This document shows, piece after piece, positions 1-55,915 of a stretch of 64,000 nucleotides of DNA (position 1 is the stretch's first letter; each line of letters opens with the position of its first letter). The stretch comes from Parasitella parasitica NRRL 2501. Lineage: Eukaryota > Fungi > Mucoromycota. The stretch lies in NCBI GenBank assembly GCA_025201805.1, contig MU619247.1, positions 294,482 to 358,481 of the forward strand, given 5' to 3'. The notes below the pieces were generated by a model. The model worked only from the letters and a program-made list of their open reading frames with translations. It was not told the DNA's origin and did not search any database. Made by a program: the position numbers and the translations under genes.

Positions 1-183
1 CATCAGGTATTGAAGTGTAAAACTTGCAATATTTACTGGAATCGCGATGCCATGGCCTCGAAGAACATGCTCACCATTGCCACATCAATTTGGTGTGGAA
101 ATGGCCGCCCCCAGGTCTTCAAAAGACATACCGCCACCTCGAATGTGGTTGTTGCTGCTCACTCCGGTGAGTCAGCAACTTAA
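1..183 (+). CDS. C-terminal fragment of a Fanzor (eukaryotic TnpB-like RuvC nuclease), 5' part outside the window
   Basis: Frame 1 reads HQVLKCKTCNIYWNRDAMASKNMLTIATSIWCGNGRPQVFKRHTATSNVVVAAHSGESAT*. This has the second CxxC of the zinc finger, the WNRDxxAxxN RuvC-III motif and the downstream RP motif typical of Fanzor/TnpB. Confidence 0.85.
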   Translation, partial: HQVLKCKTCNIYWNRDAMASKNMLTIATSIWCGNGRPQVFKRHTATSNVVVAAHSGESAT

Positions 184-365
184 AGGTATTGCAGGTAAGA
201 AGCTGTAACAATTCTGATTCTTCTGAAAGATACTAACATTGTCTCCATGTTCATACTCATGTCCCATTTTCATCTTGTTGTCCCATTTTCGTATTCGTGA
301 CCCAACTCAATTTGGAAATGACCAAAATTTATTTTCATTGGCCCAACCTAGTTTCGTCAACTGTA
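184..365 (+). mobile_element. Candidate right end of the Fanzor-bearing DNA transposon (Tc1/mariner-like terminus) and putative omega-RNA region
   Basis: The reverse complement of 340-365 reads TA|CAGTTGACGAAACTAGGTTGGGCC, a Tc1/mariner-style TA|CAGT start. Short internal repeats are present (GTCCCATTTT twice near 261 and 280; CCCAAC at 301 and 342). The matching left end is not in the window. Confidence 0.5.
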
Positions 366-1410
366 CGCATCTTATAATATAGATTACAAGGCTATACAAA
401 CACTTTTTTATATGACCAATTTTCAAATATTCAAAAACACCTTTTTTTGGTAGTTTTTGAATAAAAGCGATTATATTTTGAGCAAATATAATCCCATAAA
501 CTCGATCAAGCAATTCGTCATGCCAGTTCCTACACATCAATATTTTGTTCACAACTGTTTCTTCATTACTTCTGTTGAAAATAAAAATCTTGTCTCGACC
601 ATATGCTGTAAAATCTGCAAAATCTTGTTCTTGCAATATCTCCACAACAAACTTAGATATCAACAATCCAAAAACATAATCAGGTACAGTTATTATACTA
701 GTATTATTCTGTAGTCTTAGTTTCCACCCTAAATCCTTAACTAAAAATCATCCTAAAGGTTGTCCCAAAGTTGAAAATCTTCTTCTGTTCGCTTCGCTTA
801 CTACAGAACTGGCTACGCAGCAGTGATAAAGCCAGATAAGGCAAAGAAAATGTTACCGTCCTGAGGCTTGAACTAAGGCCTCTGTTGTGGATATCAGAAA
901 GCTTTCACAGAAGCGCGCTTCCTTTGATGGTATCATAAAATGACATGTTGGTTATGGAATTATATAATGATCAGTAATTGGAACAGAAGAATAAGAAGAT
1001 CGAGAAGAAGGATTAAAGAGATCTCCTCAACAAAAAGATGCGAAATGCACTATGGATGTTGAATAGTGAGTTGAATTTCTTGGAGACTTCTTTTAGTACT
1101 ATTTCTCTGATGGTAAAAGAAGCAAGAAGACGATATTGTTTATTATAAAGTTTATAAACTTTATGTTGACCTTACGTTACAAAATCGATAAACGCACAGC
1201 TTCATATGAAAACTATCTTGCCCGCGTAAGAGTTCCGCCTGTAACGAATAATCTAATTTGAAGATACCTCGTTGGTAATTAGTAATTATCTTGGTAGTAC
1301 GTTTCTGTTGTGCTCACGTATACAAAGAAGACTCCGGAAGGTATTTAAACTTCAATTTCTGATATTTTCAGGGAGGTCTCATTTTTTATTTCGTGTTTTC
1401 GCTAGAAAAA

Positions 1411-1936: not shown

Positions 1937-4900
1937 TTAAGAGGATGTAGTGGTGGGTGCGGGTGAAGGACTAAACATTTTTCTATCGTTGAATATAGTG
2001 CCAAAAGATGAAACAGTAGAAGGCGTAACTGTATTTTTACCATCGAATGCTGCAGGAGAGTCAAGGGGGGTTTTGAGTGTCATTTTCTTACTGAAACGCT
2101 GACCAGTTCTTTCAGTCTCCCAATCTTCCCATTTCTTCATGACGAGACGAGTAGGGTCAAATTTACCATCTGCATCGCCATGCGAATCGCCCTTCTTTTC
2201 ACCTACGACAACACGAGTGGCGCCCCAACTGAAGTCGTCGAAATGCCAGAACGAATACAGAGGTAAAACAAAATTCCAAATGGGTAAAGCGAAGAGATAG
2301 ACTATAATAAGGCGGATGACATGAGAAACAGCGCAACCATGCAAGCATTAGCCTACTTACCAATCATCCACAAAACATAAATAAATTTGAAGGTTGTAAT
2401 TGCAATCAAGACTGCAGGAAGCCCGAGGATAGCAATTAACAATGCAAGAGATTGCCATTGAGGGTCGCTTGATATGGCTGTATTCACAATCAAGTATACA
2501 GTCATAACGATAGCAGCAGGCAACACCAGAGTACCAATTAAATCAATAAACACAGAGAATTGCATTGACAAACATGCAATACCACAGAGATCAGACACCA
2601 GCACAAGCTCCATCAAATTGTGAACCGTTGAATTGATCCAACGACGACGCTGGGAAAGTAACACTTTGAATTCATCAGGAACTACAGTCTTACAGCGTGC
2701 TTGAGGCACAAACATCATTTGACGTCGAGGAAATGTACGCAGCATGAGGGTAGACAAAAATCGATCCTCACCGAGGAGCAAGAGATTCTTTTCGTGCAGT
2801 GTGGTGACCACATTTTGATTGTACTCGAGAATGATATCGGGATTTGCCAAAATGGGGACCCAGGCACCATTCTTTGGCGATTTAATACGATACATACTGA
2901 AACAGCCAGGCAAGCAAGTGACGATACCAAACAATGACTCGAATGCTTTTGCATAATGATGGGAGATATAGTATTCAAAGACCTGGATAGCAGTTACCCC
3001 TTTATATATAAAGATTTAGTATAAGCGACTCCATGTATATAAACATATCCTTGCACCTTACATGATGATCTTTTGTTGGCGATTCTAGTTTCACCGCACA
3101 AGCCCATGATAGTAATATCGTTTGCCATGGCAGCAACCATGTATGTGAGAGCATCAGGCAAAACTTTGGTATCAGCGTCAACCTAGCATAGCATGTCAAT
3201 ACATATTCCATGCAAATGTGCGCCATCCTTTTTTTTTTTTTTTTGTACCATTAAAACCAATTCAAATTTATCAGGTGTAACTCCCTTCATCAGCCATGTC
3301 ATTTTCCAGAAAATTTCATAGTCGAGTTCAGACAGACGGTCGTTGAACAAGACACGCTGAAAGTAACTCATCAAGATGAGCTGAATATACACAATGTCAG
3401 AATGTTTGCTCATGCACGTATCATATAACTCTAACCTGAGAATCACGTTTGCCACGATTACCGGCTTTTGGAAGATTAGCCTCTTCTTCTGTACCACATT
3501 TGACAATGGTGATACAGGGTACACCTTTGTAATGACCAGCATACTAAAAAAAAGTTGACAAAATGAGCGACAATTCCCGGGGTTTCCGCTGACAAGTAAC
3601 TTACCACTTTGGCCATATTCAATTGCTTTTCACCGTCTGCAATGGCAAGATATGATGCTGGCTTAGGGTTTGTCATGGTGGGATCAAGATCCATCATACT
3701 GACAACAATGTCTGGAGTCGATTTAGATTCGCCATGGCCAGTAATCATACCATCAGCAATAACAAAGAAAATCTACGGATCTCTAGTCAATAAACAGTTT
3801 ACTGTTAGAATCTCCTCCAGGAGACTTACTTTGTGCTTTTTTGAAAAGGTCGTTTCGGCCAGACTGTCCATAGTGATGCGAAGGCCCTCTTCACCCTCAG
3901 AATAGCATGTTACCAACATGACAGTGTACAGCTCGGTGGTTACAATATCTGATTGGGCACCAGTCCCCAAGCCAACAGCCGAGCTTTGTTCGCTGAGAGG
4001 GGTATTACGAGACGAGCCCGAACCCAAGGAAGTTGAAGAAGCGTTTTGAACGACGCCATAGTTATTGTATGGACCTGGAATGTGATTTGCAGGATCATCA
4101 TTACCACCTTTAATGGAACGCCAGGCCAACCAATTTGATCTCCCCCCGGGCTTGGTCAATCTGCGACTGATGAACCATTGGAAAAGCAAAGCCATCGAGT
4201 AGCGGATGACAATCATGACGATAATGACTACCAACATCAACGTCATGATCATAGAGTCGGCAATACAGCCACCCGTTTCCGTCTCCATGATACCCACTTT
4301 ATAGCGAGCTGCAAGACATTTGCGAGCATCTTTACCTGCTTGCGAATACAGCAAGGCGTATGACAGATCGTTTGCTAGGTTGTTACGGATAGCGCGATCG
4401 ACTTCTTGACCAAACGGAGGAGTAGGATAATTCATATATTTTGTCAAATTCAGCACTAACATTACACAAGAAAATTAATTGGGGTTGTTTGTTTTTCAGT
4501 CAATTTCCTTTTACCTGAATCGCCAACTAAAGTTAGACTACGACCATATACCAAATTTTTGTTTAGATCCTGCCAGTCAAAGCCAATAACGGCTGAAGAT
4601 TTGTAGTATCTGTGTAATTCAGCAAGCGAAAAACAGGTATTGTCGGGAGCAGCTAAACCGCCGCCATAAGGATTTACAAGAGCACAGTTGGTCATTGCCA
4701 TAGCAGGGAACTTTGTACAAGCGCCCGTAGTATCGCCGTCAAAGATGCTGCTGATGTCTGTGTTTTCATAGTCGTTTGTCAGATTTATGCCCTTGGTTTC
4801 AAAGAAAGACTTCATGACATCCATTGGATAGATTGTGCCAAACACTCGAACGTCGCTGTAGTACACTGGAATACGCGCGCCGTTTGTTACTCTGGAGAAG

Positions 4901-5865
4901 GGAGAGTTGCTGTCGGGCGTAGGACAGAGCGTCTTGTTGAGCCCGTAGGTGATGAACGCAAGAGCGCCGCACAGAATGAAAATGATATAGCACAGCGACA
5001 GTTTTTCTCTCCATGCCTGTTGCACCATGGCGTTTCTTTTCCGAAGACACACACGCAAGAACCAGTTCGGGATGCAGCAGGTCATCAAGAAGGCAAGCCA
5101 TGCCCACCAGCTGGTGAGCACTTTGACCTTTTCCTCTGGCGGAGGAGGCTGTTTTTTGTGCGTTGGCTGTGGTTGTGACATTTGTGGCTGATTTAACAGT
5201 GCTTGTTGTTGTTGTTGTTGTTGTTGTTGCTGCTGCTGCTGCTGCTGGATTTTTTGTTGCTGCAACTGATTTTGCAAGCGATTAGGCATGGGATAGTTGT
5301 TGGGACGAGGTCGCTGCTGCTGTTGCTGTTGTTGAGGATGGCCATACTGTCCATTGTGATATCCTTGCTGTTGCTGTAATCGCTGTTGTTGCGAAGGAGA
5401 TCGAATCATACCTTGACGAGGACGCTGCCTTTCAGGACGAGAAAGCGATCTGGATCTATTCATACTCACTCTGCGGTAAGGGCCTTGACCGCCCATGGGA
5501 CCCGCAGGCACCATCGGCTGATGTTGCGGTCTCATTGGCCTTCCGCCTTGTGTAGGCATACGCTGTGGTGATGGCTGTTGTCGAGAGGATTGATACATGT
5601 GATTGACCGACTGTCTGGGCTGTTGCTGCTGTTGATAGTGTGAAGGAGGACGTCTCTGCGGCTGCTGCTGCTGCTGCTGGTGGTGGGGCGGAGGACGTGG
5701 GCGGTTTAATTGATCCATGCTGTAGGATTGCACTCGTGAGCCTCGTGATTGCTGCTGTTGATGTTGCATTTGGGGAGACATCACTGGAGGCCTCATCGCA
5801 TAAGGCGATTGAGATAATCGAGGATCAGGTCGGTACCCACTGGATCGATTGTTTGGGTTTGACAT
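1937..5865 (-). CDS. chs: Chitin synthase, class IV (Chs3-like, Chitin_synth_2 family), multi-exon, polyQ N-terminus
   Basis: Motifs [38 protein letters not shown] and [12 protein letters not shown]; AWREK transmembrane region; no myosin motor domain. Confidence 0.95.
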
Positions 5866-54592: not shown

Positions 54593-55915
54593 TTAAATAT
54601 GTTCCTCACTTGAGCACTTTTCAAAAACGTTCACAAAATGCTGTACAAACGCATGGAGGTGATTGGGAGGGACAGAATTACAAGCTTCAGTAAGCCGTGT
54701 AGTTGAGTCCTCTTTGTCCTCAAATTTACTACACTTGACTTTGTTCTTAACTATTGCCCAAAACGGCTCGATTGGGTTGAGCTCTGGAGTATAGGGTGGA
54801 AGATAAATAGGCTTATAGTCTCTCTTAGTTACAAGTTCATCTATTTCTTTAGCAGTGTGAATAGGCACATTATTCATAACTGTGTAATGACCCTTCATCT
54901 CAGGGAGACAGTTCATCTCGTCCATAGTTTTCTCAAGAAATACATGGTAATGGCCAGTAACAGTACCTCTAGACACAGACTTTTTGTTACTAGATGGCGT
55001 TTTTCTTTTGCGATTATAAAAATTGGTCTTGATGCGCTTGGACCATTCCTCTTGGGGGTTTCGAAGCTCCATGGATACAACAAATTTAGAAGAAATGGCG
55101 CCCAAAATCGTATGCGATGCTGCTCTCGTAGAAAGAGTGGATTACAATAGCTGGTTTTCCTTTTTCAGCCCAACCACCTGAAGGTCGCATGTTGATATTG
55201 AAAGCAGATTCATCTACAAAAACGCAGCTTTCAAGATAATCCATATCTGTTGCAGTCCATTGTTTGACCCAAGCCAGTCGATTATCAATCTTGGTGCTAT
55301 TGTTTCTAGCAACTGGTTGAAGTATTACTTTCTTGAAAGAAAGATTGCACTTGGTCGTCATGAAGTTATAAACAGTACTCTTTTTAATACTTAAGTCTGC
55401 AAAGTTGTGAGTGAGAGAATCAACTGCGTCAGTCAATCGTGCTTGCGGGTTATCATCGAAAAAATCTACTAGGTGAGTTTTATGTTCTGGTCCTAGCTGA
55501 GGCTTTGGTCTATTAGCCAAGTTTATCTGCTTTTCTAAAATATTCCAATCCTTATCTTCTTAAAGTCTTTTAGCCCACTTTTGAGCCGTTCATTCGGCAA
55601 TACCGCCAGCTAAGCGACGAGACTTCGCAGCATCGAAAAGCTTAACTCTATTCGTATAAACAAACAAAAGCCTTTGTTCGATTAAATATTTATCTAAACC
55701 TTTCTCTGCAGTTTACATGTATTTGCAATCTCCTATGTTTGTATCTAACTCCAAGCCAGGCTCCTGCTCACTTCCTTATATTTCACAGTACTATCTAATA
55801 CGAGTTACGGTGATCAAGTGGAATTGAGTTACCTTGTCTTCCGATTCATGGTATCATTTCCCTGCTCATCGACAATCTTTCCTTGTCCATCTTCGTAATA
55901 AAAATGACAACCCAT
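54593..55915 (-). pseudogene. Tc1/mariner DDE_3 transposase pseudogene (near full length, frameshifted)
   Basis: MGCHFYYEDGQGKIVDEQGND start, HTH region, VFVDESAFN, VMNNVPIH (catalytic D changed to N), YLPPYTPELNPIEPFW; frameshift near 55100-55140 and in-frame stops upstream. Confidence 0.92.

Follow-up and report, generated by a model that had tools for sequence, protein, structure and literature searches.

The 64,000-nucleotide stretch of the Parasitella parasitica NRRL 2501 genome analysed here (the 'window'; contig MU619247.1, G000:C11:294482-358481) begins with the tail of a gene for Fanzor1, an RNA-guided nuclease, carried by a transposon whose right end lies just inside the window. Frame 1 of bases 1–183 (plus strand) has no internal stop and encodes 60 residues, including LKCKTC, WNRDAMASKNM and GRPQVF, ahead of a TAA stop codon at 181–183. 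On its translation, its match to SpuFz1 and comparison with sister and Mucor copies, it is the 3′ part of the sixth and last coding exon, with the second CxxC codons at 16–18 and 25–27 and the RuvC-III aspartate codon at 46–48. The initial annotation had claimed this open frame, the motifs, the RuvC-III aspartate and the clean stop, and translation bears out each of them; it was also right that the open reading frame (ORF) list had missed the frame, which was left out because it crosses the window edge. The 60 residues alone match SpuFz1 (PDB 8GKH) at E 7.8e-5, with NRD opposite the RuvC-III aspartate, so the tail is not a chance resemblance; the Pfam TNB domain (PF07282) matches the same 60-residue piece weakly (15.7 bits). 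Finding a Fanzor C-terminus in a Mucorales genome is nothing unusual; what stands out is the guide architecture, a guide-RNA precursor predicted to be split by a spliceosomal intron.

The Fanzor1 gene and the assembly gap

A run of 2,635 Ns directly precedes window base 1, and almost all sister copies with both ends assembled also contain N runs. Because they recur in nearly all sisters, and because most of their lengths are multiples of 5, we interpret them as gaps left in the assembly where a repeat collapsed. Only 61 of the window copy's 822 codons (stop included) are assembled; these are lesion-free and the remainder is N. Sister copies carry 14 frameshifts or stops in about 4,790 assembled codons, some of them possibly assembly errors, and the complete copy in M. 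circinelloides (L051) has one premature stop. Such a lesion rate makes intact genes the minority, so it is unlikely that the window copy's Fanzor1 gene is intact and probable that it is broken. One sister (L039:9352, on G000:C185) shows no stop or frameshift over 470 assembled codons; its right repeat is interrupted by another, inserted sequence, and the donor–acceptor distance of the intron-like segment described below is there about 1.3 kb.

The upstream landmarks, which fall in the N gap of the window copy, were read in sister copies and in L051 instead. L051 is 95% identical to the window family and has six coding exons summing in frame to 821 codons, a figure that is the sum of exon lengths, each exon having been searched singly. 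The RuvC-I aspartate lies in VDPGRRD (L024, L039 and L051, aligned to SpuFz1). The RuvC-II glutamate lies in INEFKTSK, followed across an intron by CNNC in sisters and in L051, and stands six residues before the C4 zinc finger, a spacing used as a Fanzor1 criterion (PMC13565253). Sister copies and L051 hold the whole D-E-D triad (RuvC-I DPG, RuvC-II E, RuvC-III D) and both CxxC pairs. The C-terminal 358 residues of L051 match SpuFz1 at E 5.9e-12, PpFz1 at E 0.0025 and the TnpB-like L79 (9B0L) at E 0.0053, and PF07282 scores 35.3 bits on protein P0027 against a cut-off of 26.3, which the C-terminal part of L051 also exceeds. In size and class the gene agrees with Fanzor1, having 821 codons, being nearer Fz1 than Fz2 or TnpB, and residing in a eukaryotic DNA transposon; relatives were found across Mucorales. 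On every sequence criterion that could be applied, the window-edge gene is a Fanzor1. The annotation's assignment to Fanzor thus stands, as does its statement that Mucorales transposons carry such genes, which is published (PMC3627910). It said nothing of the element surrounding the gene, nor of the intron-like stretch within the guide-RNA region.

Fanzor2 and bacterial TnpB were ruled out by size, introns and PDB ranking, and identity with the known P. parasitica protein PpFz1 by protein distance (E 0.0025) and by failure to find the PpFz1 omegaRNA (guide RNA) sequence in this genome; a match to RtxA at E 1 was dismissed as chance. The Logan, ENA and JGI database proteins inspected run into introns, and these matches are therefore genomic rather than transcript-derived. 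Close to the protein start is a CxxC-H-C zinc-knuckle-like motif (L051:2690-2750), and a K/R-rich insertion in RuvC (L051:4490-4620), at about the position of the PpFz1 FRI domain, is probably a nuclear localisation signal. In two gene models of M. circinelloides (P0053 and P0055, L051:5754 region) a piece of Fanzor RuvC-I is fused with F-box-like sequence of the host, probably because the gene caller mis-joined an insertion.

The transposon and its insertion sites

Window bases 1–365 match about two dozen genomic places at 89–98%. The window copy, whose left end is about 3.3 kb before window base 1, measures about 3.68 kb in all. Most copies have terminal inverted repeats of about 145 bp that are 85–92% alike, begin CAGTTG (CAGTTGACG) and have TA on both sides. 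The right repeat occupies 240–363, its inner limit being approximate, and in this copy lacks a 27-bp subterminal stretch; the TA target-site duplication follows at 364–365, as in all copies. A pattern search recovered 58 ends of the window family, amounting with the C99 pair counted to 26 paired elements plus 7 ends without a partner, and 15 ends of a sister family; the genome has about 30 copies of the Fanzor1 element. At all four empty paralogous sites the flanks abut once one TA is counted, i.e. exactly 2 bp had been duplicated. A 2-bp TA duplication with inverted ends is the Tc1/mariner pattern; a MuDR-type shell was ruled out by the duplication being 2 bp, not 9 bp. The complete copy L051 contains no DDE transposase. 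DDE_3 genes lie 300–400 bp from related, non-identical inverted repeats at two genomic places (G000 C74 and C52), and another stands head-to-head with a relative in L056, whose left end could not be placed.

Among relatives at 54–58% protein identity the inverted repeat is in some cases nearly the same and in others different, and on that account the Fanzor gene has switched shells. A second family (L050, G000:C39:33219-37625, with 13 further ends) has a near-identical repeat (CAGTCGACG) and a different Fanzor; it shares the acceptor position and the T preceding the left TA, both discussed below, and has a 179-bp miniature copy at C6:288608-288786. The element is about 95% identical to its M. 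circinelloides copy through introns and ends, compared with 72% between the CRM1 gene next to that copy and its counterpart here, a difference that suggests recent horizontal transfer of the element, one host gene being a thin control. At 11 left ends (C1, C5 (two), C18, C23, C29, C33, C34, C51, C58 and C96) the repeat begins CTG for CAG, a change of its second base; this variant, which has evidently still spread, occurs at none of the right ends, where that base serves the predicted stem described in the next section.

A predicted guide RNA interrupted by an intron-like segment

Window bases 128–194 fold as two hairpins (z = −4.9). Predicted stem-loop 1 (133–149) and stem-loop 2 (151–179), both on the plus strand and inside the coding frame, are followed by an invariant CTTAAAG linker and the TGCAG arm (190–194) of a last scaffold stem, together spanning 179–194 up to the predicted splice donor. 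Across eight sequences, whose proteins range down to about 41–58% identity, stem-loop 1 is kept with little covariation and stem-loop 2 has 7/10 pairs changed on both sides. Overall, 95.7% of cells pair, 7/15 hairpin pairs vary on both sides, and CTTAAAG and T-R-CAG-GT-AA are invariant. The covariation score was matched by 0/500 shuffles, and slid controls pair at 33–43%; the eight sequences are kin, so these figures are not to be read as probabilities. Rfam gave no credible match for the scaffold, matches below threshold being taken as chance. The comparison points to a conserved, structured right-end RNA overlapping the end of the Fanzor1 ORF, with a predicted role as omegaRNA; in Fanzors the 3′ target-site duplication forms part of the scaffold (PMC13565253).

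From the donor onwards, bases 195–351 (plus strand) form a predicted 157-nt U2-type spliceosomal intron, with a GTAAGA donor, a CTAAC branch motif at 233–237 and an acceptor AG at 350–351. The segment spans almost the entire right inverted repeat and holds no AG from 237 to 349. What follows it, bases 352–365 (plus strand), is a predicted final 14-nt scaffold piece, made of the element end and the TA duplication and serving as the 3′ stem arm: TGCAG on the donor side, extended by TT, pairs in register with AACTGTA to give 7 bp ending at the TA beside the flank (stem arms were paired by coordinate). The same layout was found in seven divergent relatives, from M. flavus (two families), M. saturninus, Cokeromyces, Rhizopus microsporus, Benjaminiella and Gilbertella. 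All eight loci keep TRCAG|GT (with a GC donor in Gilbertella), a CTAAY motif 34–46 nt past the donor, an AG 9–12 nt before the element end (14 nt to TA in the window) and an in-register stem of 6–7 bp, and they span two unrelated inverted-repeat types, R. microsporus having a GAAA tetraloop. In a distant metagenomic copy (L057), whose end is a guess, a longer arm is met by a longer end (8/9 pairs).

Published elements agree. By eye, ROr-1, ROr-2, ROr-3, MCi-1 and PBl-1 (PMC3627910, additional file 2) have a donor after the scaffold and an AG 2–12 nt before the end. Their arm and end letters change together: TACAG/CTG+TA in ROr-1, TACAGT/ACTG+TA in ROr-3, TGCACTTT/AAAGTG+TA in ROr-2, TACA/TG+TA in MCi-1 and TACC/GG+TA in PBl-1, and in the intron-less SPu-1 the equivalent stem is contiguous (PMC3627910). 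From such comparisons we infer that 195–351 is spliced out. Further AG|GT sites within the 3′ segment (L053:3670, L058:5468, L059:6081, L065 at about 5300, and ROr-1) suggest tandem introns with no exon between them, i.e. recursive splicing. In four relatives AG|GTAA sites cut the segment into intron-sized lengths.

Could the stem form without splicing? Its outer five pairs can, and Fanzor omegaRNA lengths are known to vary (75–150 nt; PMC11423790), so that one might imagine a long, unspliced scaffold of about 235 nt with the inverted repeat looped out of the last stem and the splice-like motifs incidental. Such an RNA would leave to coincidence that in different inverted-repeat families GT marks precisely where the stem breaks off and AG precisely where its pairing is taken up again in register, that CTAAY recurs at its spacing in all eight tabulated loci, and that AG|GT sites in several relatives divide longer segments into intron-sized pieces; we regard it as very improbable.

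Insertion sites bear on what the guide would recognise. A T preceded the left TA in all 17 copies first seen, and its prediction for ten unseen left ends was correct in 10/10, compared with 5/28 right ends at the same position (Fisher p 6e-11). Left flanks read TTA in 27/27 cases and ATTA in 21/27, and those of the M. circinelloides and M. flavus relatives are also ATTA. SpuFz1 has a conserved CA ahead of its left repeat and a target-adjacent motif (TAM) of CATA (PMC10432273); reading the left-flank bias by the same logic, the predicted TAM of the window family is 5′-ATTA, with TTA as its strict part. The annotation had described the TAM as uncharacterised, which holds for experiment, but the insertion sites already predict it. 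The filled right junction reads TGTA, which is not the predicted TAM, and would for that reason be protected from cutting. Flank bases 366–385 (plus strand), which differ among copies, are the predicted guide of the window copy; no empty target matching this guide with ATTA was found elsewhere in the assembly.

A second unspliced form would be short: TGCAG (190–194) would pair with an internal CTGTA (203–207), leaving a fixed internal guide from 208, as in PpFz1. Bases 128–240, unspliced, are indeed predicted to fold with that hairpin, and the published PpFz1 omegaRNA is contiguous through GCAG|GTAAG in a ribonucleoprotein (RNP) that cleaves DNA in vitro (PMC11423790). Against this, a pairing partner within 40 nt of the donor occurs in the window family only (0/7 relatives), whereas all eight pair with the element end at 5/5 positions, and a fixed internal guide would miss the empty site and leave the left-flank bias unexplained. 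We accordingly regard this form, too, as very improbable. The internal pairing would place the donor in a hairpin loop of the unspliced RNA, and may be a fold of the precursor, possibly a regulatory one, peculiar to the window family.

A different objection accepts the intron and denies it a role in the guide. If 195–351 were merely an intron of the 3′ untranslated region (UTR), stripping the repeat from the mRNA for the sake of stability or avoidance of RNA silencing, the family could be largely decayed and without a working nuclease, as the many broken Fanzor1 copies, even the complete M. circinelloides copy with its one premature stop, might suggest. An intron of the 3′ UTR alone fails to explain the co-change of arm and element end, the covarying hairpins or the strict TTA flank, and this account too is improbable, if slightly less so than the unspliced RNAs.

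Several points nonetheless weigh against a spliced guide in a mobile element. Support for the splicing of 195–351 comes from sequence comparison, in which the database relatives are kin rather than independent cases. Attempts to resolve the relative from Mycotypha (L064) failed, and neither it nor L046 was informative. Between branch motif and acceptor lie 115 nt, a long way for a fungal intron; the AG-free stretch, weak by itself, is seen in 2.8% of shuffles; and CAG before GT is the ordinary consensus of exon ends. CTG+TA is also the transposon end, so that the pairing could partly reflect two separate constraints. The DDE_3 genes found lie near related ends, none of them shown to have exactly those of the window family.

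Taking these together, we consider it probable that the element is a non-autonomous Tc1/mariner-type Fanzor1 transposon whose guide RNA is built by the spliceosome and directs cleavage of empty sites. A DDE_3 transposase would move the element in trans. A transcript passing the Fanzor1 stop and the right end into flanking DNA would lose 195–351 to the spliceosome, uniting the scaffold (about 133–194) with the last 14 nt and thereby completing the 7-bp stem closed by TA; in the product, a 15–20-nt guide derived from the flank would follow on a scaffold about 76 nt long. The Fanzor RNP is predicted to cut the empty site (5′-ATTA plus flank), and the element would then be restored by repair that draws on a filled sister or nucleus (predicted homing), the filled TGTA junction escaping. 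Even from a broken window copy, the right end could still provide guide in trans. Somewhat less firmly, we think it likely that Mucorales Fanzor1 omegaRNAs are spliceosome-built, sometimes in two or more steps at AG|GT, leaving the nuclease free to change shells, and that an unspliced precursor made in yeast is the source of the PpFz1 omegaRNA as published, with its short second stem, and of the ATN TAM.

Were this so, the host spliceosome would be maturing the guide of an RNA-guided nuclease, a eukaryote-specific way of reconciling long transposase-binding ends with a compact scaffold. Such maturation would go some way towards explaining the capture of Fanzor1 by many transposon types, as just the last 2–14 bases of the shell must fit. 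It would further predict the correct scaffolds for a large fungal clade, mis-designed when read from contiguous DNA, flag the published PpFz1 structure for re-examination, and offer 5′-ATTA as a testable TAM.

Beyond the element, bases 366–600 belong to a dispersed repeat hosting the insertion (about 80% identity among copies), which is unrelated to the element and resumes beyond its other side. This host repeat (window 366–780, L021:5290-6189) has over 200 candidate copies; about 200 bp of it recurs, directly oriented, to either side of the insertion, and a tandem or long terminal repeat-like unit is possible. A chitin synthase-like gene with a Q/P-rich start (1937–5865, minus strand) is an ordinary host gene, and a broken DDE_3 transposase remnant lies at 54731–55472 (minus strand).

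Comparison with known systems

The system is of a known kind, a SpuFz1-like Fanzor1; its difference is a guide precursor predicted to be split by a spliceosomal-type intron, and no description of spliced Fanzor guide RNAs was found in the literature searched, which left out most subscription papers. SpuFz1, carried by SPu-1 (PMC10432273, PDB 8GKH), is the best solved match (E 5.9e-12). Like the window family, it sits in a non-autonomous element that has inverted ends and duplicates TA; in both, conserved bases ahead of the left TA predict the TAM, and the last scaffold stem is closed by the element end plus TA. SpuFz1 has 633 residues and no introns, whereas the window family has 821 codons in six exons; its element has repeats of 30–33 bp rather than about 145 bp; its omegaRNA is a contiguous 88–90 nt after the stop, while the scaffold here overlaps the ORF end and is split by the intron-like segment; and its TAM is CATA, compared with the predicted ATTA.

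PpFz1 of P. parasitica itself (PMC11423790, PDB 9CF0-9CF3) and ROr-1 are, like the window family, Mucorales Fanzor1 systems with a scaffold end of TTAA..TRCAG followed by GT and an insertion between RuvC-I and RuvC-II, although the PpFz1 protein is distant (E 0.0025). The insertion in the window family, about 55 residues and K/R-rich, is likened to the PpFz1 FRI domain by position, not by homology. The PpFz1 omegaRNA was defined in yeast, unspliced through GCAG|GTAAG and with a TAM of ATN; its guide starts shortly after that point, inside the equivalent of the intron-like segment (U26, C50–C58 in the paper's numbering; PMC11423790). The ROr-1 scaffold is almost identical to the PpFz1 omegaRNA as far as CAG|GT and then diverges. 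ROr-1 carries an AG|GT site of the ratchet-like kind, and its acceptor stands 8 nt short of the element end. The published PpFz1 RNA, we infer, is probably an unspliced form.

ROr-1/2/3, MCi-1 and PBl-1 (PMC3627910) duplicate TA (or TAN) and, like the window family, have inverted ends, Fanzor1 genes with introns and the same donor-to-end layout. Neither the repeat nor the C-terminal motifs of the window family turned up in the searched part of that paper's supplements; the paper appeared before omegaRNAs were described, and searches by term found nothing in it on the 3′ intron. In IStrons, which combine TnpB with a group I intron (bioRxiv 10.1101/2023.11.20.567912), splicing and guide-RNA formation are described as sharing a transposon end, as is predicted here. 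The self-splicing intron of an IStron is described as cutting out the entire element in competition with the guide RNA, whereas that of the window family would be a spliceosomal intron within the guide precursor, its removal predicted to be necessary to build the guide.
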